NCBI RefSeq assembly: GCF_001194135.2
Contig: NC_068982.1
Location: 107,082,064 to 107,146,063 of the forward strand
Length of the DNA stretch: 64,000 nt
Source: Octopus bimaculoides
Lineage: Eukaryota
Direction: 5' to 3'
In this document: in pieces, positions 3,902 to 61,612 of the stretch
Numbering within the stretch: position 1 is the first letter of the stretch
Layout of the letters: every line of letters begins with the position of its first letter
Made by a program: the position numbers and the translations under genes
Notes under the pieces: model-generated
Told to the model about the DNA's origin: nothing
Seen by the model: the letters and a program-made list of their open reading frames with translations, nothing else
Database searches by the model: none

Positions 3902-3950
<49 letters not shown>

Positions 3951-4060
3951 NNNNNNNNNNNNNNNNNNNNNNNNNNNNNNNNNNNNNNNNNNNNNNNNNN
4001 NNNNNNNNNNNNNNNNNNNNNNNNNNNNNNNNNNNNNNNNNNNNNNNNNNNNNNNNNNNN

Positions 4061-9814: not shown

Positions 9815-11514
9815 TGTGTATATACTGTTTATCTATTTATATTACCGACGGTACCTACTCTATAAATGCACTAACACCAGGATATAGTTCGTGACAAATT
9901 ATGAATTTTATCTTAGTTTTGGTGCCTTTACAAAGAAGGCATAACCGTTTACAAAAACATAATTGTGTGGAAGACATCAAATATAAGTAATATATATATT
10001 GCTGCGAATACTTACCATCAATCTGGTATTAGTTTATTGAATTCTACTTATAAAATGAATACGGAGAAAATCTACTTTAATCTACGGAACCGAAGAGGGA
10101 CATTTTACGTGCTTGAAATAGCAGCCATATCGCCTTTATATCACATTAAACTGTCTTGTTAAGCGAAGGACACGTTATACATAGTTGTCCTTTATACTCT
10201 TGATGGTTTATGACTGAAATGGCTTTGATTATAGATCTTCTCGATTATGATTGACCTAGCATTAACAAAAGTAACAGCAACAAAGGCACCTCTAATTCGT
10301 TGCTAGACCTAGTAAAAATAGCAACCTTATCTTCCTCAAATCACACCCTACTATCTTAAAAAAGGGCACACTATATAATGTAGTCCTAGACACACAATAT
10401 ACAAAGTAAAAGATAGGATCGTCTTGGCTGAAATATTTTTAATCGTAGGTCTGTTCTTTCAGGACTGACCCAAACTTAAACAACTTAAATTAGATATTAT
10501 CTCCCTTGTTTCATTTAAAGGTGTTAATTTTTGTTACTTTACGATGCAAGGGAGATTACAACGAAAAAAAAAATGTTTCATAAACAATTGTATATTTCCT
10601 TACACAATATACTAATTTAATATATTTTCGCCGGACAAAAAAAAAAAAAAAAAAAAANNNNNNNNNNNNNNNNNNNNNNNNNNNNNNNNNNNNNNNNNNN
10701 NNNNNNNNNNNNNNNNNNNNNNNNNNNNNNNNNNNNNNNNNNNNNNNNNNNNNNNNNNNNNNNNNNNNNNNNNNNNNNNNNNNNNNNNNNNNNNNNNNNN
10801 NNNNNNNNNNNNNNNNNNNNNNNNNNNNNNNNNNNNNNNNNNNNNNNNNNNNNNNNNNNNNNNNNNNNNNNNNNNNNNNNNNNNNNNNNNNNNNNNNNNN
10901 NNNNNNNNNNNNNNNNNNNNNNNNNNNNNNNNNNNNNNNNNNNNNNNNNNNNNNNNNNNNNNNNNNNNNNNNNNNNNNNNNNNNNNNNNNNNNNNNNNNN
11001 NNNNNNNNNNNNNNNNNNNNNNNNNNNNNNNNNNNNNNNNNNNNNNNNNNNNNNNNNNNNNNNNNNNNNNNNNNNNNNNNNNNNNNNNNNNNNNNNNNNN
11101 NNNNNNNNNNNNNNNNNNNNNNNNNNNNNNNNNNNNNNNNNNNNNNNNNNNNNNNNNNNNNNNNNNNNNNNNNNNNNNNNNNNNNNNNNNNNNNNNNNNN
11201 NNNNNNNNNNNNNNNNNNNNNNNNNNNNNNNNNNNNNNNNNNNNNNNNNNNNNNNNNNNNNNNNNNNNNNNNNNNNNNNNNNNNNNNNNNNNNNNNNNNN
11301 NNNNNNNNNNNNNNNNNNNNNNNNNNNNNNNNNNNNNNNNNNNNNNNNNNNNNNNNNNNNNNNNNNNNNNNNNNNNNNNNNNNNNNNNNNNNNNNNNNNN
11401 NNNNNNNNNNNNNNNNNNNNNNNNNNNNNNNNNNNNNNNNNNNNNNNNNNNNNNNNNNNNNNNNNNNNNNNNNNNNNNNNNNNNNNNNNNNNNNNNNNNG
11501 CACTGCTCTCTCAC

Positions 11515-11849: not shown

Positions 11850-12410
11850 ACCTAAAAGTGACCTGTTGTGGCCGTAGCAGTAATGGTTGGAATTGTTCTA
11901 AATTCTTGTAGTAGTTTCATTTCTGGTGGAAGCATTCAAAAAACGTTTATATTTTGCGATAAAACATGCTTCTTTGCTAATGCGCTGATTATAGGTTGCA
12001 TTGTCCCTGAATGTATTGAAGGGAAAAATTCTAAAGTTGGGTTGTTCGTTAGTAGTGCAAATTTCAATGTGCTTGCTTAATCCTATTTTTATGTATTCCC
12101 CTATGTACCGTCATCCTCTGGCGCAGACTGTTTTTAGTTTTACCAATATATTGTTCTCGATACCCTGAGCATGTTAATACATATACTAGGTTTTCCGACG
12201 CACATGTGAAGTTGTTTTTCACTGTAAAACGTTGACCCTGCTTGAAGGAGAATTCTAACCTCTCAAATAGGTTGACACATATACCACAGTTAAGTTTTCC
12301 GCAATTTTTTACTGTCGGCTTTAATGCTGTTGGCGAGTGTAGTTGGGCCTGTGTTCGAAAACTTTTCATTGACTTGGGTTTTCTTTTGTTCTTTATGATG
12401 CATATCCCTT
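11850..12410 (-). mobile_element. Penelope-like element GIY-YIG endonuclease remnant
   Basis: CGKLNCGIC...FTCASENLVYVLTCSG..QYIGKTKNSLRQRMTVHR in ORF 12064-12369; FRIFPF and RISKEACFI downstream. Confidence 0.85.
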
Positions 12411-12790: not shown

Positions 12791-14572
12791 CCCATTTCTT
12801 AATTTTTCACTTTTTTCAGAATTTTGTTTTTTTGGCGAAATAAGTAGACAAATACGGAGATTATGATTCTGAAAAAAAAAATGTTTGTAAAATTTCAATT
12901 AAAAAAAAAAAATTACCCAACCTACTCCCCTCCCAAATCTGCGGCCTACAAGCAGGCTATCCACATGTTAGAAATAACAGCCAAATCTCATACAAACTCT
13001 TTTTGGCACATACGTACATACTCTGTATCGAATGCTTTGCTGTATCAGTCTTTGCCTTTCCCTTGGATAACATTGGTGGCATGGAGAGGGTAGGTTGTTA
13101 TGCACGGAGAGGGTAGGTTGGTATGCATGGGTGACTACCGGTCTTCCATAAGCAAATTTGTCCGGACTTTTACCCTTTTCCCCAACTAGATATTAGTAAC
13201 CACACTGGTCTTCTACAAAACTTGCACTACCACACACCCTTCTCATAGATCATTCCCTTGTCCACTGGCATGAAGCTGACCCCACCCCGCAGGATTTGTA
13301 GTTCTGCGAGGTACATGGCAACCTCAATAGTCAGGTGGTATGAAAAAAAACACCTAGTCTATGCTGTAAAGCGGTTGATGTGAAGAAGGGTATCTAGCCA
13401 TAAATAGGAGACCAAAAACAGACATTGGAGCACAGTGCAGTCCTTGGACAAATCGTATCCTATCAAACTGTCCAGCCTATGCCAGCAAGGAACATGGATG
13501 TTAGATGATGATAATGATGATAACTTATTATGTTTTTTTTGTGAAAATGTTCCTGGATATAACAACACAAAAATAACCACTGCAGAGTTAATGGTGATAA
13601 TGATGATAACCCCCCCCCGCTACCCCCCCCGGACAAGAATAAATAGATAAACAGATAGATAAATAAATGGATGAAAAAGTTCAAAATTTAAAATTGGNNN
13701 NNNNNNNNNNNNNNNNNNNNNNNNNNNNNNNNNNNNNNNNNNNNNNNNNNNNNNNNNNNNNNNNNNNNNNNNNNNNNNNNNNNNNNNNNNNNNNNNNNNN
13801 NNNNNNNNNNNNNNNNNNNNNNNNNNNNNNNNNNNNNNNNNNNNNNNNNNNNNNNNNNNNNNNNNNNNNNNNNNNNNNNNNNNNNNNNNNNNNNNNNNNN
13901 NNNNNNNNNNNNNNNNNNNNNNNNNNNNNNNNNNNNNNNNNNNNNNNNNNNNNNNNNNNNNNNNNNNNNNNNNNNNNNNNNNNNNNNNNNNNNNNNNNNN
14001 NNNNNNNNNNNNNNNNNNNNNNNNNNNNNNNNNNNNNNNNNNNNNNNNNNNNNNNNNNNNNNNNNNNNNNNNNNNNNNNNNNNNNNNNNNNNNNNNNNNN
14101 NNNNNNNNNNNNNNNNNNNNNNNNNNNNNNNNNNNNNNNNNNNNNNNNNNNNNNNNNNNNNNNNNNNNNNNNNNNNNNNNNNNNNNNNNNNNNNNNNNNN
14201 NNNNNNNNNNNNNNNNNNNNNNNNNNNNNNNNNNNNNNNNNNNNNNNNNNNNNNNNNNNNNNNNNNNNNNNNAATCGTAATTCCCATAGTCGAAAACGTG
14301 GGTTTCCGTAAAAAAAAATTAAATTAAGTGGGAGGGGTAGGGTACGTCTCCGCTATGTGCGCCCAAATCATAATGTAATTCTTTTGTCAGTGATTATACT
14401 TCTATTTTACTGAAAATAACTTGAAAGATATTTGTGCTATTAAATTCTTGAAAGTGATTCTTTCTCTCACGCTTTTATATTATTTCTACACCAGTTTTCT
14501 CCCTTGAATGTCTCCCGAAGCTTTCTAATTAAACTTACCTCATCTCATTAAAGAGTTCCTTAAGACAGCACA

Positions 14573-17302: not shown

Positions 17303-17501
17303 GTATTTAGTATACACACACATTTACAAAAATATGATTGTATAGCTATTACTATAAAATTGAATACATCCTATACTAATAAATATCTGAAAACCTTTCA
17401 CTCTGGTACCTCACCATTATCATCTCTGTCTTTCCAGCTATTCCTTCCCACCCTTATATTATGTGGGATAGCTATGTATCTCTGCTTGTTCATCTATCAT
17501 G

Positions 17502-17873
17502 TGGAGGCGCAATGGCCCAGTGGTTAGGGCAGCGGACTCGCGGTCATAGGATCGCGGTTTCGATTCCCAGACCGGGCATTGTGAGTGTTTATTGAGCAAA
17601 AACACCTAAAGCTCCACGAGGCTCCGGCAGGGGATGGTGGCGAACCCTGCTGTACTCTTTCACCACAACTTTCTCTCACTCTTACTTCCTATTTCTGTTG
17701 TGCCTGTAATTCAAAGGGTCAGCCTTGTCACACTGAATATCCCCGAGAACTACGTTAAGGGTACACGTGTCTGTGGAGTGCTCAGCCACTTGCACGTTAA
17801 TTTCACGAGTAGGCTGTTCCGTTGATCGGATCAACTGGAACCCTCAAAGTCGTAAGCGACGGAGTGCCAACAA
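17502..17873 (+). mobile_element. tRNA-derived SINE family C, full length, 11-bp TSD
   Basis: tRNA-like head TGGCCCAGTGGTTAG...TTCGATTCC; (CAA)n tail; CATCTATCATG at 17491-17501 and 17874-17884. Confidence 0.9.
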
Positions 17874-18155
17874 CATCTATCATGGCATAAAGCCACCTCC
17901 CTCCTCTCTCAAATACACCCCCACTCAATAAGGAGGGCTTTTCCCCTTTTCTTTTCTTGCAAGTTATATAGTAACCTCCCTAGTGCCAGTGACATTAAGA
18001 ATAGCACCCAGCATACACTGTAAAGTGGTTGGTGGTAGAAAATGCATTCAGCCATAGAAACCATGCAAACCTGAGATTGGAGCTTGACGCAGTCCTGCTG
18101 TTTATCACATCCTATCAAACGATCCAACCTATGCCAAATGCCTAATTTTCTTTAA

Positions 18156-22150: not shown

Positions 22151-22956
22151 CATAAAAACAAATGAAAAAATAAAGTATTACTGTATGTATATGTTTGTCA
22201 TATATGAATAGGTCTGTATTCATATAAAGAATGGCAAATTTCTAAACATCAAAGCTCTACCACAGGAATTTACTTAACAACAACAGTAAATCCATTAGAA
22301 CTTAAGTTTAGAAATCTATATATTCACTTGTTCCCAATTATAAATTGAATTTGTAGAATATGAATCAAATTGTTTTTTTCCCTGACTACTGCTTAAAATC
22401 TTTCACACTTATTAAATGGCATAACAGGCAAATTATTTGAAAAATATGAATTATCCATATGACAATATGATTTAAAATTTGATCTAGATCAATCCAGAGG
22501 AAAATGTAATTCTCACCAAGTATGTACACTTACAACTCTGCGACCTGTATCTAGTTTGATAAGTGCCAACGCATGAAACTCTCAGACCTTGGGTCACTCT
22601 GTTGCTTCTGCTAAATATTAATAATAATAATATATATATATATATATANNNNNNNNNNNNNNNNNNNNNNNNNNNNNNNNNNNNNNNNNNNNNNNNNNNN
22701 NNNNNNNNNNNNNNNNNNNNNNNNNNNNNNNNNNNNNNNNNNNNNNNNNNNNNNNNNNNNNNNNNNNNNNNNNNNNNNNNNNNNNNNNNNNNNNNNNNNN
22801 NNNNNNNNNNNNNNNNNNNNNNNNNNNNNNNNNNNNNNNNNNNNNNNNNNNNNNNNNNNNNNNNNNNNNNNNNNNNNNNNNNNNNNNNNNNNNNNNNNNN
22901 NNNNNNNNNNNNNNNNNNNNNNNNNNNNNNNNNNNNNNNNNNNNNNNNNNNNNNNN

Positions 22957-23021
22957 ACACACCACCATCGGTTGTCAAGTGATGTTGGGGAGACAAACAC
23001 AGATACATAACATATACATGC

Positions 23022-25640: not shown

Positions 25641-25975
25641 TTCCATTCTTTCCAGGCCAGATGAAGTAGATCTGTGATCAAAATTATTCCTGTTGTGACC
25701 ATCCTGTCTTATTTTTCTTAGCATAGTGTGGCCTAAACTACATTATCCAGTCTTTTTTTTTAAAGATAGGGCATTGTTATGTGAAGGAGATTTGACTGCT
25801 CTGTTTAGCAGGTTGTATGACTACATAGACTTTCTCATTGGATTGAACCACATTGTGTTTAGTTGCAGGTCAAATTGGAGGAAACACTTAGGATAAAAGG
25901 TGTTCCAATTGTGGCCATCCTGTTTTTTTTTTTTTTGTATCAGACATTTCATGTCTCTGGTCAGATTAAATAGTA

Positions 25976-26244
25976 TCCTCCTTTATTATTAAGAAAGACA
26001 TTCACAATATGTTTTAGATGAGATTAAATAATACAGAACTGATATTTCATTACAAAATATAACATTTTTCAAACAATTATGTTAAAAATGAAAAAAAAAC
26101 AAAAACAAAAAAACAATACAAATTCATATTTTGTTTTAGTTTAAATTACAGAAAAAAATCTTTATTGTGTAGAAATATGCTTCATTGAGTGTGGCTAGCT
26201 TTAAAGGAGTAATAAAGTCATGCAGAGAAGCCCTAAAGAAATTT
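25976..26244 (-). repeat. direct duplicate of 28928-29200 (DNase last codons + 3'UTR)
   Basis: About 270-bp homology; about 85 bp around the stop codon are identical and the A-rich middle has diverged. Confidence 0.95.
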
Positions 26245-28933
26245 TAACATTTTAACATGGCCTACAAAGATGTGACTTGAAGAAGAGTTGGCTGCTTACT
26301 TCTCACATTGAGTGACCATGTAGAGCCTCCTCCCCACATCCCTCTCTGTCTTAGGTAAAGCATTATTAACTGTCTAACAAGGTTGGATAGTTAACTCTTT
26401 AAATGTAAAAATTCTAAATATGCAGAACCAAGATTATTGACCTTTTCATGTGGGGGTCATATGTTTAATTACAGTGGCAGCTATCTTATTGTGTTTTTTT
26501 GGTAAAACTTACAAATCTGTATGTGTGAAAACATTTATTTTAATAATGTTTCAATGCTTTCTCTTTTGGTGGTCTGCAAAAATCAATGTAACACCTGAAA
26601 AGCAGAAGTCTAGAAACAAAACAAAGATCTTTTTTTTTTCTCTAATGTTTTTATTCCATTCAAACCAAATTTTACATGGTTTTCTGTTTTGGTAGAGGTA
26701 CTATTTTTTTTTCTCAATTCTATTTCCATATAGTTTTTTGTGTGTAACATAGAAATTGTTATAAATAAGTAACTTATAAGAACTGCTACATTCATGCACA
26801 AAGATGTTTAGAAATAAGAACAGGATTAACAACACATTTTAACAAAACATTTTGAATATGGAGAGTGTTCTTATGCCTGGTTCAAGCTTTTTGCTTTTTA
26901 TATTAGTAATTGAAGTATTGTTTGTTCATGGAAATTTTTTCATTCAATAAACTAATTCTTTCACTGGTATTGCTACAGATAATATATTTCTAAATCTCCT
27001 CAGACTCTGATGTTTAGCTCACTTGATGTGAAGTAAAGAAGCGATAAAACATTTCTTTGATATGATACTGACTAATTATAGATGCTAGCCTTGATAATCT
27101 GGTACCTCCTCCTGGTAGCTAAATGAACAGGTTGTCTAGTACCTTCTCTACCCAGCTATTTAGCCTTTGTGTAAAGTATGATGGATGGGAATTTCCAAAC
27201 AGCATATACTCAGTATGTGCTAGTTTTACTGTATTTTTGTCTTATATTATCTGCACTTTTTAAACTATTATACACTATCATTTAAACAAACACTTGACAG
27301 TTATTGAAATAAAAGAAAATATTTTCTTAAAGCACAAAATTACTTTAGCGATGAACTAAATACATGTCTTATATGAAATTGATTTGTTTTTTTGTTGTGC
27401 TCTTCTTGTCAAATCTTTACACCACTGGATGGTAATTTAGATGTTCACACTGAACTCAGGAACATGTGGGAGGCTGAATGTGACTCAAGAAAACTGAAAT
27501 TTCAACACAGAATGCACTGTTTCTCAACATTGTTTTAGAGCAAGACTAAATGTATATTCTTACACAAAATTAATAATCTTATTTCAATAAATGCTAATTG
27601 AGAGGATTAAAGGAAACTATAATTATCGAGTTTTCTTTGTATCAAGTTATTCAAAATGATATCTATGTCTTCAAGTTGTGATTCTTTAGCATGATATGCA
27701 ATTTAATTGAGTGATGTGTGTGAGCAGTAAAAGTGAAGGAAACATGGTGGTGTAGTTAAAAAGTACTGGCAGTGGGATGTCTATGGTGAGACAGGCAGTG
27801 AGATGTTAGTAATTGAGATAGTGAATTGTGAAGAGTGCTGGGGAAAACATGAAAAGTTGGTTAAAAGATGGAAAGTGAAAGAGGTATTAAGAAGGTGACA
27901 ATGAATTTGAAGAATTTTGGCAAATAAATCTTATGTGATTTTCTGAAAGTAAAATTTGCACCCTTTAAGAAAAAACTTTAGTAAGAAAGAAAGTGTAAAT
28001 AAACGTCTAAATATGATGGTACATTTGATAAAAATTAAGACTACATATGATCGTCAACCTCTACTATAACCATTATCTTGCAATCTTGGTTGCTTCAACA
28101 TACCTGGCTGACAAACCCCATTCTTTGTAGTTGTGTAGGTAGCAGCAGAAGAGCATCCAGTTGTATAAAGAATTGCTTCAATATACTAAAAATATTGCAA
28201 AATCATTCTACCCATGGTAATGTAGAATGAGTATAAAACAGCAAAAATGTTACTTATTTGTGGCAAACAGAAAATGTAGACATAGGATGAAAATAGATAT
28301 TGAAATGGCATAAGCTGATGGTAAAGGATGTCTAGAACAGAAATAAGCTAAGGAATTTTGAGAAAGATGTAGTGAAGACAAATTTTGCTATTTAAAAATG
28401 TAAATTTTGTCGGCAGTAATGAAAAGAAGGGAGTGGATTATTCATTAAGTCTGATTTTACTTTGAATTATATTTTTTAAAACATTTTAAAGGTTAGTCTT
28501 TGTCAGTTTATTTTCATTTCATCACAACTTTGGTCTGTATTTCAATGAGATTATAAAACTCAGTATGTATGTTTTGGAAACGCTTTAAAAACTCCTTTCC
28601 TAGACATTTATTTGTGACATTTGTGACCTTGAAAATATTTAACACAGTAATCTTATTACTGCAAAAGTGACCTTATGTTTACTCTTTGATGTTTTCCACA
28701 ACCATCTTATGAATGCCTTTCTTTTGCAATTAGAAAGTTAGAATGTGATTTATTTATGAACTGACATTTACATGTTTTACTTCACTCTAGTGCTTATGGC
28801 TGTAATCTTACAAGCAAGTGAAGATATAAGTCTAAGCAATTTTAAGCCTTGGAAGCAGATTTAACTAGAAATTGTTTCATGTCTTGTTTAAATTATTTAA
28901 CTTTTAGTATTTTGCCTAAAATTAATTTCCTCC

Positions 28934-28939
28934 TTTATT
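28934..28939 (-). terminator. candidate DNase polyadenylation signal AATAAA (a proximal one at 29117-29122)
   Basis: tttatt on + at both positions, downstream of the TAA at 29157. Confidence 0.5.
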
Positions 28940-29156
28940 ATTAAGAAAGACATTCACAATATGTTTTAGATGAGATTAAATAATACAGAACTGATATTTT
29001 ATGACAAAATATAACATTTTCAAACAATTATGTTAAAGAAAAATGAGAAAAAAAAGCACTTTCTTCAACAGAATACAAATTCACATTTTGTTTTAGTTTA
29101 AATTACAGAAAAAATCTTTATTGTGTAGAAATATGCTTCATTGAGTGTGGCTAGCT

Positions 29157-29330
29157 TTAAAGGAGTAATAAAGTCATGCAGAGAAGCCCTAAAGAAATTT
29201 CAATGACCAAATTTGAACCTCCATTAGTTGTAGTTACTTCAGGTTGTGGTGTTTTTAAAGTTGAGTTAGGTTTCTCTGTAGTCACTTGAAGTGCAAATTC
29301 TATAGGATAGTGGTCAGTGACCTTTTCAGC
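29157..29330 (-). CDS. DNase I-family gene, terminal exon (DHYP motif + S/T stalk + GPI-type signal)
   Basis: tttcttcttctttttcag acceptor, phase 0; AEKVTDHYPIEFALQVTTEKPNSTLKTPQPEVTTTNGGSNLVIEISLGLLCMTLLLL*. TDHYP corresponds to the SDHYP catalytic His motif. Confidence 0.93.
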   Translation of the reverse strand, partial: AEKVTDHYPIEFALQVTTEKPNSTLKTPQPEVTTTNGGSNLVIEISLGLLCMTLLLL

Positions 29331-31386: not shown

Positions 31387-31480
31387 CATTTGTGCTGAAA
31401 GTTTATATTCTTTATCAAAATGGAAGACAGAACCAGCATCTTGAACTACATGTTTCAAATTGCTGCCAGTTATAATTGCC
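31387..31480 (-). CDS. DNase I-family gene, penultimate exon
   Basis: ttctttcacag acceptor and GTGAGT donor; 94 nt, phase 2 to 0; AIITGSNLKHVVQDAGSVFHFDKEYKLSAQM aligns with IVVAG..L...VVPGSA.PF.FQ..YGLS. Confidence 0.9.
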
Positions 31481-31559: not shown

Positions 31560-32260
31560 CCCTTTTGATACCAGCCTGCCTGAAACCACTCTGTAGTACA
31601 AATGTCTTGTTTTCAAAAGTTCTGAATTAAAATCTTCCACCAAACTTAGTCACAATTTATGTTCCTAACACTAGCTTAATAATAACTAAGTTATTTTACT
31701 AAATTCTTTGTTATATTTAAAATTAATTGAAAGAATCACAGAGTATCATCATCATCATTTAATGTCCGTTTTCCATGTTGGCATGGGTTGGACGGTTTGA
31801 TTGAGGTCTGGAGAGCCAGTGGCTGCACCAGGCTCCAATCTGATCTGGCAATGTTTCTACAGCTGGATGCCCTTCCTAATGCCAACCACTCCGAGAGTGT
31901 AGTGGGTGCTTTTTATGTGCCACTGATACAGGAGCCAGTCAGGTGCGCCTGGCATTGATCACGTTCAGATAATGCTTTTTATGTGCCACCAGCACTGGGG
32001 TCAGTCAGGGGGTACTGGCATCGGCCATGTTCAGTTGGTGCTTTTTACGTGCCACTGGCTCAGGAGCCAGTCAAGCGGACCTAGTATTGACTGTGTTTGG
32101 ATGGTACTTTTTATGTGCTACCAGCACGGGAACCCATCACGGTACTGGCCACAGCTATGATATTGGTTCTACTTGACTCAACAGGTCTTCTCAAGCATAT
32201 CATATCACACGATGCATCAGGGGTATTCAGTATCTCAACAAAAATATGGTAACAAAAGGG
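31560..32260. mobile_element. TTAA-flanked piggyBac-type MITE interrupted by a family D insertion (about 31745-32230)
   Basis: TTAA at 31556-31559 and 32261-32264; TIR CCCTTTTGATACCA vs CCCTTTTGTTACCA (13/14). Confidence 0.8.
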
Positions 32261-35641: not shown

Positions 35642-35903
35642 TGGTCATAAGTACAGCTGTTATCCTCAACTGTTGTATCATCAGAGATCAACCACTTGTA
35701 ACTCATATCCTTCACAATCAGTAGATTTTTTTTGCATTCATCATTGCAGTATTGACAATCTGTGTTCAGTGTACCCATGATGACAAAATTTTTCTGACTA
35801 ACTTTCTTCTCTAGCTCATTTATTACTTCAACAAGTGAATCCATTTCCTCCTTTACATTATCTGAATCCACGTGAATACCAATGATTGTCACTTCAGTTA
35901 TAT
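35642..35903 (-). CDS. DNase I-family gene, central exon (His134, GxxN and YD motifs)
   Basis: ttcctatttttcag acceptor and GTGAGT donor; 262 nt, phase 1 to 2; ITEVTIIGIHVDSDNVKEEMDSL...MGTLNTDCQY...WLISDDTT...CTYD aligns with bovine FAIVALH..SDAVAEINSL...MGDFNADCSY...WLIPDSADTT...CAYDR. Confidence 0.95.
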
Positions 35904-40232: not shown

Positions 40233-40333
40233 CATCATAGGGCAATGAAAATGTACCAACAAGCGGAGGTCTGCGAAACAAATTTGCTGTTTTCTTAGAA
40301 AGAGTTTGAGTATTGTACTTTATGTGTTTCTTC
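40233..40333 (-). CDS. DNase I-family gene, internal exon
   Basis: ttcttttacttttccag acceptor and GTAAGT donor; 101 nt, phase 2 to 1; KKHIKYNTQTLSKKTANLFRRPPLVGTFSLPYD aligns with SFSREPAVVKFSS. Confidence 0.88.
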
Positions 40334-43690: not shown

Positions 43691-44077
43691 TGGAGGCGCA
43701 ATGGCCCAGTGGTTAGGGCAGCGGACTTGCGGTCATAGGATCGTGGTTTCAATTCCCAGATCGGGCGTTGTGAATGTTTATTGAGTGAAAACACCTAAAG
43801 CTCCAGGTGGCTCCAGGAGAGGATGGTGGCGAACCCTGCTGTACTCTTTCACCACAACTTTCTCTCGCTCTTACTTCCAGTTTTCGTTGTGCCTGTAATT
43901 CAAAGGGTCAGCCTTGTCACACTGTGTCATGCTGAATATCCCCAAGAACTACGTTAAGGGTACACATGTCTGTGGAGTGCTCAGCCACTTGCACGTTAAT
44001 TTCACGAGCAGACTGTTCCATTGATCAGATCGACTGGAACCCTTGACGTCGTAAGCGACGGAATGCCAACAAAAAAA
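43691..44077 (+). mobile_element. SINE family C, full length, 12-bp TSD
   Basis: Colinear with 17502-17873; TATAATGTTACT at 43677-43688 and 44078-44089. Confidence 0.9.
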
Positions 44078-59361: not shown

Positions 59362-59662
59362 TGTTGTTGTTGCCACTCCGTCGCTTACGACGTCGAAGGT
59401 TCCACTTGATCCGATCAACGGAACAGCCTGCTCGTGAAATTAACGTGCAAGTGGCTGAGCACTCCACAGACACGTGTACCCTTAACGTAGTTCTCGGGGA
59501 TATTCAGCGTGACACAATGTGACAAGGCTGGCCCTTTGAAATACAGGTACAACAGAAACAGGAAGAAAGAGTGAGAGAAAGTTGTGGTGAAAGAGTACAG
59601 CAGGGTTCGCCACCATCCTCTGCCGGAGCCTCGTGGAGCTTTAGGTGTTTTCGCTCAATAAA
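59362..59662 (-). mobile_element. SINE family C, 5'-truncated
   Basis: Reverse complement of about 17590-17873; TSD-like CACTAGCAAAGT / CACTGGCAAAGT. Confidence 0.88.
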
Positions 59663-60403
59663 CACTGGCAAAGTAGTATTATACTAATATACACGTGACT
59701 TTTGAAATCTGACAGAGCGGCACGCTGACAGGAAATACCTTAGAGTATTTAGATTTGTCCTTCTACATTATACATTCAAATGCGATTGGATTCGAGTTTG
59801 GTTTTCATCTACTCGAGGTCGTTAAAATAAGTACTAGTAAAAATACTAAGATCGGCTCAATCAACTATAGTCCTCCCCAATAGTGACTCTAGAATTATAC
59901 CAATGTAAGAAATATACTTCCAAGATGTTTCTTATCCCAATGCAGTCTAATATTGATTTTATACAATCTGTAGTCGATACAATAAGAGCTAGTAATGGAT
60001 AAGTAGTTTGATTAAATTTTAAGGTACAAAATAATTTTATCAGAAAACATCATAAATGAACATATGTGACGGATGAAAAAATGTGCTGAATTTAATTTCT
60101 TCAGACGATACCAATCAAAGAATATAAGACACAAAGCGTCAACAGTTATTTTAGGGTTTAATCCATTAAAAACCTAAAACATATTTTGTTAATAAATCTA
60201 TCAAAAGAACTATTTCATGAAGGCGAACTTGTAAAATGGACTGAAAGTAAATAAGACCGCAAAGAAGTACCACTCGACTTGTATCTAAGAATGAGGTAAA
60301 AATATGAAATGGTTGAATGAAAAAAAAAGTATCTACACCATACAAGTCTGTGTGTCTCTTGGAAGGTTAGTTTACACTATTTGTCCACAGAGAAGCGTAT
60401 TAT

Positions 60404-61543: not shown

Positions 61544-61612
61544 CTGTAAAGGAAGCCATATTGTTCTTTATCGTCTCCAAGAGGTTTACTGAGTTTGTAG
61601 CCAAAGTTTTCT
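61544..61612 (-). CDS. DNase I-family gene, most 5' exon found in the window (E78 exon)
   Basis: atcttttatttttcag acceptor and GTAAAC donor; 69 nt, phase 2 to 2; ENFGYKLSKPLGDDKEQYGFLY(R) aligns with TYHYVVSEPLGRNSYKERYLFLFR. Confidence 0.88.

Follow-up and report, generated by a model that had tools for sequence, protein, structure and literature searches.

A DNase I-family protein of octopods with a predicted GPI-anchor signal and a degenerate active site

The stretch of Octopus bimaculoides DNA analyzed here (contig NC_068982.1, positions 107,082,064 to 107,146,063 of the forward strand; 64,000 nucleotides, referred to below as the window) carries on its minus strand the 3' part of a gene annotated as "deoxyribonuclease gamma" (XP_014772757.1 / A0A0L8HGK6, 316 amino acids). 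The DNase gene is already present in public annotation; what is new is a tethering signal at the C-terminus of its product, the octopod-wide conservation of this signal, and its pairing with a decayed active site. Considered as a whole, the comparisons described below make it fairly probable that the gene encodes an octopod-specific member of the DNase I family that is tethered by glycosylphosphatidylinositol (GPI) and has a degenerate active site. The window sequence is identical to chromosome CM046602.1 of assembly GCA_001194135.2.

Probing of the window by tblastn with DNase I-family proteins identified five minus-strand exons of the DNase gene (Table 1). The complete gene has seven coding exons spread over ~90.6 kb (in O. 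sinensis the gene range exceeds 100 kb), and coding exons 1-2, which encode the protein from the signal peptide to approximately residue 86, lie ~8 kb and ~56 kb past coordinate 64000, outside the window. Consistent with this, probes from human DNASE1, DNASE1L1 and DNASE1L3 and from the Argonauta ortholog found no 5' exons or signal peptide inside the window. Exons 3-7 have canonical splice sites, with AG acceptors and, in exons 3-6, GTRAG donors (that of exon 3 is written GTAAAC), and their phases are mutually consistent; for exon 4, the join with exon 3 is AG+G (Arg) and the join with exon 5 is G+AT (Asp). The spliced in-window product of 232 residues is 100% identical over its full length to XP_014772757.1. 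The terminal exon (29330-29157, minus strand) forms the 3' end of the gene: it opens after a polypyrimidine-AG acceptor, ttcttctttttcag, at 29330 and closes with TAA at 29159-29157, and minus-strand translation of 29345-29154 gives …LLLFQ/AEKVTDHYPIEFALQVTTEKPNSTLKTPQPEVTTTNGGSNLVIEISLGLLCMTLLLL followed by the stop.

Table 1 Features of the DNase gene and its surroundings in the window (residues in bovine DNase I numbering unless given as N295 or G296; a slash marks a splice junction).
Feature	Coordinates	Strand	Evidence and remarks
Coding exon 3 of 7 (…ENFGYKLSKPLGDDKEQYGFLY)	61544..61612	-	tblastn; AG acceptor, GTAAAC donor, phase fits exon 4; 100% match to XP_014772757.1; holds E78 and 'DD' in place of the R73-Y76 DNA-contact loop
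Coding exon 4 (KKHIKYNTQTLSKKTANLFRRPPLVGTFSLPYD)	40233..40333	-	tblastn with DNASE1L1 and P0001; R111 inside; C101-C104 loop missing
Coding exon 5 (ITEVTIIGIHVDSDN…IMGTLNTDCQYC…SCTYD)	35642..35903	-	tblastn, E = 1e-10 to 1e-39; holds H134, T168 (normally the catalytic base Asp), N170, C173, D201, C209, D212
Coding exon 6 (AIITGSNLKHVVQDAGSVFHFDKEYKLSAQM)	31387..31480	-	tblastn; splice sites cacag/G and ATG/gtgagt
Start of exon 7, last DNase-fold strand (AEKVTDHYPIEFALQ), with D251 and H252	29286..29330	-	PDB alignments end …EFALQ
Stalk, 20 residues, VTTEKPNSTLKTPQPEVTTT: 8 Thr, 1 Ser, 3 Pro, one N-S-T sequon	29226..29285	-	translation
GPI-attachment-signal-like segment	29160..29225	-	candidate omega N295 (or G296), G/G/S at +1 to +3, spacer N-L-V-I-E, end ISLGLLCMTLLLL
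TAA stop directly after four leucines, zero cytoplasmic residues	29157..29159	-	translation; same position in Argonauta
AATAAA hexamer, possible proximal poly(A) signal	29117..29122	-	35 nt past the stop; not conserved in congener contig L001
Candidate alternative terminal exon (VTNVTNKCLGKEFLKRFQNIHTEFYNLIEIQTKVVMK, then stop)	28514..28627	-	internal donor CCTGAA/GTAACT, last exon base 29238; matches C-terminus of CAI9717104.1
Partial duplicate of the gene 3' end	25968..26247	-	91% identical to 28920-29203; non-coding, 16 open codons

The 316-residue protein is laid out as a signal peptide (residues 1-22), a DNase I-fold domain (23-274), a Thr/Pro stalk (275-294) and a segment resembling a GPI signal (295-316). 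The N-terminal signal peptide, judged by eye, reads MPTDNQF-LKCLLLLTIVPL-SYA/TFPRIG… in O. bimaculoides. The N-terminus of the full-length protein P0170, MPTDNQFLKCLLLLTIVPLSYA/TF, shows an h-region and small residues at -3 and -1, and equivalents are present in the Argonauta, O. sinensis and O. vulgaris proteins. Membership of the DNase I family is evident from sequence similarity, with 561 library proteins matching at E <= 1e-10 and phmmer matches in the PDB to DNase1L3 (7kiu, E = 1e-40) and DNase I (~1e-33). An AlphaFold2 model built with 65 homologs has a mean predicted local distance difference test score (pLDDT) of 88.5 and is confident for residues 23-274, and its top Foldseek matches are the DNase1L3 and DNase I structures 7kiu, 4awn and 2dnj, at template-modelling (TM) scores of 0.90-0.92 and root-mean-square deviations of ~1.8 Å (range 1.7-2.1 Å). 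Together, AlphaFold2 and Foldseek indicate the four-layer alpha-beta sandwich of the DNase I / endonuclease-exonuclease-phosphatase (EEP) fold, and both cysteines of the essential disulfide C173-C209 align in all octopod copies. Every PDB alignment stops at …EFALQ, before the 42-residue C-terminal tail, and in the AlphaFold2 model residues ~277-297 of the tail are coil (pLDDT ~47-52) and residues 298-315 form a helix. Because the PDB alignments and the AlphaFold2 domain limits end at this point, the tail is an appendage beyond the DNase fold.

This tail has the features of a GPI-attachment signal. In O. bimaculoides, the disordered stalk is followed by small residues at the candidate omega, +1 and +2 positions (N295-G-G, or G296-G-S), by a polar-interrupted spacer, S-N-L-V-I-E, and by the hydrophobic end ISLGLLCMTLLLL (12-13 residues), after which the frame stops. 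The protein thus combines an endoplasmic reticulum (ER) signal peptide with small residues at omega and omega+2 and with a spacer and hydrophobic end at the very C-terminus. At 13 residues, the uninterrupted hydrophobic run is too short for a stable bilayer-spanning helix, and no basic stop-transfer residue is found. Under a strict rule set for GPI-like endings, this AT-rich window, which has 560 open frames of 42 codons or more, contains only 3 that qualify (~0.5%), the frame with the DNase tail among them; the rule set is crude but stricter than needed, as several hydrophobic-tailed relatives of the fish DNase1L1 type fail it. A GPI-anchor signal is the best reading of the tail, and the protein is probably tethered to the cell surface. 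If so, the signal peptide would send the protein into the ER, and GPI transamidase would cut at the omega residue (N295; Ser in other octopods) and add a preformed GPI lipid. The protein would then move to the outer face of the plasma membrane, where the stalk, probably O-glycosylated, would keep the globular domain a few nanometres off the membrane. An initial annotation of this DNA had listed the N-S-T sequon, the N-G-G-S small-residue cluster, the hydrophobic end and the absence of a cytoplasmic tail, all of which are present in the translation; the peptide it gave is correct except that 'QV' between FAL and TTEK was dropped and the minus strand was left unstated. Its proposal of a surface-tethered invertebrate DNase-fold protein is borne out as regards the DNase I fold, the full set of GPI-signal features and their conservation in octopods, while the anchoring itself is a prediction.

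Comparison across octopods gives the strongest support for the GPI-signal reading. In O. bimaculoides the stalk ends in …TTT and is followed by the omega triplet NGG, the spacer SNLVIEIS and the hydrophobic end LGLLCMTLLLL. The corresponding elements are …TTT, SGG, SNLIIEIS and LGLLCMALLLL in O. sinensis and O. vulgaris, and …TTT, SGG, SNLIIEIS and LGLLCMTLLLL in a fourth Octopus species known from genomic contigs (L001, L002). Argonauta hians (63% identity overall) has …TKV, SGA, SKLIFQIS and LTVLSLILLML. In the four Octopus sequences and in Argonauta, 21 residues follow the omega Ser/Asn and the polar/hydrophobic pattern is shared, and the Argonauta stalk is 9 residues shorter. Identities between O. 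bimaculoides and O. vulgaris are 20/20 in the stalk, 19/22 in the signal (N>S, V>I, T>A) and 231/252 in the domain; by this measure the tail is conserved to the same degree as the domain. At the nucleotide level, the tail codons differ from the congener contig at 5 positions in 126 nt (96% identical), compared with 9.8% in the neutral flank (Fisher p = 0.016), where the neutral rate was taken from intron and downstream DNA, ~90% identical to the congener. The tail codons contain zero indels, and the ratio of nonsynonymous to synonymous differences (pN/pS) is ~0.5, although the estimate comes from 5 substitutions alone and to that extent weakens the case. The Argonauta locus has the same seven-exon layout, with stalk, tail and stop in the same terminal exon and a recognizably homologous 3' untranslated region (3'UTR). 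Two O. vulgaris models, the O. sinensis model and the O. bimaculoides model all end in a tail of the GPI type.

The tail is thus real and more than chance: the GPI reading is well supported by sequence features and conservation, with attachment itself being predicted. Several points nevertheless count against it. The omega-site assignment follows rules of thumb, the hydrophobic end is at the short limit for GPI signals, a Glu lies within the spacer, and the public O. bimaculoides protein XP_014772757.1 is a 'PREDICTED' model. In addition, the O. vulgaris model CAI9717104.1 ends in …PEVT-NVTNKCPGSKLLKRFQNIHTEFDNLIEIQTKVVMK, that is, with a hydrophilic exon that is also open in the window. Use of this exon (28627-28514) would remove the omega site and the hydrophobic tail and give a hydrophilic end, and in the window it has an acceptor (ttttcaag/GTC), 37 open codons and, where these end in the stop, an AATAAA. 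In the congener contig, the same exon is frameshifted, contains several stops and is 83% identical, below the neutral level, and in the Argonauta gene we found neither the donor nor an exon homologous to 28627-28514. The model CAI9717104.1 itself looks partial or noisy because the signal peptide is also missing from it. The hydrophilic exon was rejected as the main end of the gene, since it is frameshifted in the congener and missing in Argonauta. Its use probably reflects noise in splicing; at most, it would yield a soluble isoform of minor importance restricted to one lineage, and a functional role appears improbable.

The 3' end of the gene also takes part in a two-copy direct repeat of 286 bp with a spacing of ~2.95 kb. 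The segment at 28920-29203, which consists of the last 14 codons, the stop and the 3'UTR of the DNase gene, is repeated at 25968-26247, and the 5' edge of the repeat lies inside the coding sequence at an acceptor-like 'tttctttag/G'. Argonauta has homologs of the tail, stop and 3'UTR, yet no second copy of the 3' end was found in the 3 kb that follow its gene. The 25968-26247 segment is therefore a young, partial copy made from the gene end rather than the origin of that end; for the same reason, an origin of the tail by read-through into a transposon or repeat was rejected. Use of the second copy as an alternative terminal exon was also considered. Splicing of exon 6 to 'tttctttag/G' would give …SAQM-GFSA and a stop, without the DHYP strand, and this received no support.

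The catalytic and metal-binding residues were compared in bovine DNase I numbering, with roles assigned according to PMC8002113 and PMC6832162. In PMC8002113, D168 is named as the catalytic base, and Mg2+ is bound by E39 and D251. In every octopod copy, D168 is replaced by Thr. Among 149 top family representatives, position 168 is Asp in 144, Asn in 4 and Thr in one, the Argonauta ortholog; the window protein also has Thr. E39 is replaced by Gln in the three Octopus species, and position 251 is Asp in O. bimaculoides, Glu in the L001 species (L001 ~629-847), Val in both O. sinensis and O. vulgaris, and Gly in Argonauta. The side chain at this position differs in almost every octopod (P0276, P0279, P0001, L001), while both catalytic histidines are invariant. 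The residues that contact DNA we take to be R9, R41, the Y76 loop, R111, Y175 and Y211, from the DNase I-DNA complexes 1DNK and 2DNJ together with mutagenesis studies. The loop R73-N74-S75-Y76, in which Tyr76 enters the DNA minor groove, is replaced by acidic Asp-Asp in every octopod copy, with Y76 deleted. R9 is changed to Q or N and R41 to K or Q (Q and K, respectively, in O. bimaculoides). All four keep R111, whereas Phe takes the place of Y175 in Argonauta and of Y211 in O. sinensis and O. vulgaris. Thus, octopods have neither the complete catalytic and metal set (H134, H252, E78, D212, D168, N170, N7, E39, D251) nor the full set of DNA-contact residues, and the octopod protein is predicted to cut DNA poorly or not at all and to bind it poorly.

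Inactivity is not the only outcome that these residues allow. No octopod copy shows a change at H134, H252, E78, D212, N170, N7, D201 or the C173-C209 disulfide (D201 being the Asp of 'DTT' and D212 that of 'YDR'), which speaks against a dead enzyme; with both catalytic histidines and their partners E78 and D212 in place, as well as N7 and N170, some residual or altered activity is possible. The reading that fits best is a conserved pseudo-DNase, or a DNase of altered specificity, that is tethered at the surface and would derive from an active, similarly tailed ancestor. The initial annotation had reported the D168T change, which the residue table extends to all octopod copies, and had suggested that a tethered protein with this change could capture extracellular DNA rather than degrade it. 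The capture idea loses ground, since the elements that grip DNA have been lost and acidified together with the catalytic base: R9 and R41 are gone, the minor-groove loop has become 'DD' and Y76 is absent. Pfam PF03372 (Exo_endo_phos) gives no match for P0170 or P0001 even at E <= 1, and the sister protein P0007 passes with 38 bits against a gathering cutoff of 24.5. The family is therefore undetectable by this profile in the octopod T168 proteins, and domain-based annotation pipelines would miss them.

The relationship of the octopod protein to other DNases was assessed with neighbor-joining (NJ) distance trees, using 200 bootstrap replicates for the test with human paralogs. The octopod protein falls in a cephalopod-type clade with 100% bootstrap support; this clade sits amid molluscan sequences, next to one from a gastropod, and evolution is faster on the octopod branch. 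In 161 of the 200 replicates (80%), the four human paralogs form a group that excludes the octopod protein, and human DNASE1L1 clusters with the tailed proteins P0074, P0078 and P0104, of which P0078 is the DNase1L1 of the teleost Channa argus. By this NJ placement, the octopod protein is not an ortholog of DNASE1L1. Because the octopod clade sits among molluscan sequences and is excluded by the human paralogs at this frequency, an origin independent of vertebrate DNASE1L1 is favored. The convergence that the initial annotation had called probable is thus the reading to which the trees point.

The nearest relatives outside octopods are P0007 and P0171, at 43-45% identity, and the resulting four-protein clade has 100% NJ bootstrap support. 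Both are known from spliced transcripts with uninterrupted open reading frames (ORFs; Logan samples SRR27666079/61 and others), and the spliced mRNAs L003 and L004 (SRR27666079, SRR27666061) encode a canonical-site DNase ending in a stalk and hydrophobic tail. The source is probably another cephalopod or mollusc. The P0171 transcript cluster comprises 111 contigs, and a canonical-site DNase I with signal peptide, stalk and hydrophobic tail is abundantly sampled. P0007 and P0171 share with the octopod protein the CxYCxxxC and CTYDQ motifs, the signal peptide, a Ser/Thr/Pro stalk and an alignable hydrophobic C-terminus. They keep every catalytic and metal residue, as does an untailed second Argonauta paralog (P0019), and the only differences in the residue table are T and G for R73 and N74 in P0007/P0171 and Q for R9 in P0019. 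Whereas P0007 and P0171 look like active tethered DNases, the octopod clade looks like a degenerate derivative, and the P0007-type protein is likely to be the active counterpart of the octopod protein. Since the tails of these sister proteins align with that of octopods, the tail appears to be older than the octopod-specific changes in the active site.

Among known proteins, one of the closest parallels is mammalian DNASE1L1 (DNase X), which the initial annotation had invoked and which is established as a GPI-anchored DNase I-family ecto-enzyme on the outer leaflet (PMC13649258, PMC9208542, citing Shiokawa et al. 2007). Like DNASE1L1, the octopod protein combines the DNase I fold with a signal peptide and a C-terminal hydrophobic signal of the GPI-attachment type. 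However, the catalytic set of DNASE1L1 is complete and the enzyme is active, in contrast to the D168T, E39Q, variable D251 and missing Y76 loop of octopods. In DNASE1L1, moreover, hardly any sequence separates the fold from the signal, where the octopod protein carries a Thr/Pro stalk of 20 residues. DNASE1L3 (DNase gamma; 7kiu), the best PDB match and the source of the public name, has the same fold at 32% identity and a TM score of 0.90; it is a secreted, active enzyme with a basic C-terminal peptide (PMC9208542). The octopod protein instead ends in a stalk and hydrophobic signal and is without key catalytic and DNA-contact residues. Thus, the name 'deoxyribonuclease gamma' is a label of similarity that over-states both orthology and activity.

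Tethered forms may be more widespread in the family. Hydrophobic C-terminal extensions are found in ~20 of the 149 top family representatives (~13%). In the sponges Sycon ciliatum (XP_065198361.1) and Geodia barretti (CAI8053063.1), as in the octopod protein, a DNase I domain leads through a low-complexity Ser/Thr/Pro linker to a hydrophobic segment at the terminus, and the same order of domain, linker and hydrophobic segment is seen in the starfish Patiria miniata (XP_038076017.1), the annelid Owenia fusiformis (CAH1776658.1) and Naegleria lovaniensis (XP_044552486.1). Unlike the octopod protein, these five keep D168, and their tails cannot be aligned with the octopod tail; some of these non-vertebrate tails may be transmembrane anchors and not GPI signals. 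Our literature search found no paper describing hydrophobic-tailed non-vertebrate relatives of DNase I. In the phylogeny of PMC9208542, no invertebrate DNase1 sequence falls within the vertebrate groups, and the sequence set of that study includes no octopus DNase1.

The fate of the hydrophobic C-terminus can be explained in other ways than by GPI attachment. It could stay on the protein as a short membrane anchor (type I, with no cytoplasmic tail), as might be suggested by the AlphaFold2 helix at 298-315 and by the 17 mostly hydrophobic residues from L300 to L316; in P0057 and P0108, hydrophobic segments are followed by basic residues and resemble true transmembrane anchors. A short run, the lack of a stop-transfer basic or cytoplasmic residue, and a small omega triplet are the features that separate GPI signals from such anchors, and the octopod tail shows each of them: the run is only 13 residues, a conserved Glu/Gln lies in the segment, nothing basic or cytoplasmic follows, and a conserved small-residue triplet stands at the expected omega distance. 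A retained anchor is thus unlikely. We regard it as still more doubtful that the protein is mainly soluble or secreted, either through the splice from 29238 to 28627-28514, which gives a 37-residue hydrophilic end, or through shedding of the GPI form, in which case the tail would belong to an isoform that is minor or regulatory. In other proteins, a switch from a GPI-anchored to a soluble form through the choice of 3' exon is known, CAI9717104.1 has exactly such an ending, and the donor, acceptor, 37-codon frame and AATAAA are present in the window. Nevertheless, the exon is broken and 83% identical in the congener, where the GPI-tail codons are intact and 96% identical, and Argonauta has neither donor nor exon. 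The other octopod models end in the GPI-type tail, and CAI9717104.1 is without a signal peptide.

It is also conceivable that the tail is accidental, arising from repeat or transposon read-through, a decaying pseudogene or an annotation artefact. AT-rich DNA readily encodes Leu/Ile-rich peptides, the last 14 codons, stop and 3'UTR lie in the two-copy 286-bp repeat, catalytic residues have been lost, and Pfam is blind to the domain. This explanation is largely refuted and very improbable, as the tail, stop and 3'UTR are homologous in Argonauta and hence older than the duplicate, neither Octopus nor Argonauta shows a broken exon or a phase conflict among the seven coding exons, the fold prediction is confident, and the tail evolves more slowly than its flanks and is of a kind found in only ~0.5% of the open frames of the window. 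A more substantial alternative, although we consider it unlikely, accepts the GPI anchor but holds that the protein is an active ecto-enzyme, acting on DNA by a modified mechanism or on another phosphodiester or phosphate substrate. A dead site would be expected to drift, whereas H134, H252, E78, D212, N170, N7, D201 and C173-C209 are invariant across a deep divergence; the Foldseek neighbors include TDP2, EEPD1 and CNOT6L, and the EEP superfamily includes lipid and sugar-phosphate phosphodiesterases. On the other hand, the substrate-binding loop is deleted and acidified, D251 has been replaced so freely that four different side chains occur in octopods, unlike in an active metal site, and both the catalytic base D168 and the Mg2+ ligand E39 (roles from PMC8002113) are replaced. 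The GPI-tethered DNase I-family protein with a degenerate active site is therefore the reading that we prefer.

Other features of the window were also recorded. The intron between coding exons 6 and 7 contains a 66-bp tandem repeat at 31907-32104 (2.5-3 copies, 73-75% identical). An interspersed repeat family of 300-390 bp has at least three copies in the window (~17501-17880, 43691-44075 and 59363-59666; 89-96% identical pairwise, one inverted), and further copies occur elsewhere in the introns of the DNase gene. On the minus strand at 12091-12291, an ORF fragment carries a GIY-YIG nuclease motif (PF01541, E = 3.9e-4, 21.1 bits against a cutoff of 22.6) and is probably left over from a Penelope-like retroelement. 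Assembly gaps (runs of N) at ~1340-1900, 3950-4060, 10600-11490, 13700-14280 and 22640-22960 are often flanked by microsatellites, and none touches a DNase exon.

DNase X has been described as the only membrane-bound DNase (PMC13649258), and the GPI anchor, gained by DNase1L1 in bony fishes, has been called a 'unique property' (PMC9208542). The octopod protein allows a different, tentative proposal, which we consider possible although not the likeliest outcome. Since before the split between Octopus and Argonauta, a GPI-tethered DNase I fold that neither cuts nor grips DNA may have been repurposed for surface recognition or adhesion, and tethering of this fold may be ancient and recurrent in animals and even in protists. 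An analogy is provided by dead cholinesterase folds, which gave rise to adhesion proteins of the neuroligin type. If true, such ancient and recurrent tethering would contradict the view of a 'unique' bony-vertebrate innovation in DNase1L1, and DNase X could no longer be called the only DNase bound to a membrane. If tethering is real in cephalopods as well as in sponges, echinoderms, annelids and Naegleria, placing this fold at the cell surface would be a recurrent solution. The P0007-type and octopod T168-type proteins would form a natural active/inactive pair, with which one could ask how surface DNases contribute to the immunity of invertebrates or to barriers against DNA uptake, and why a surface pseudo-DNase is maintained.

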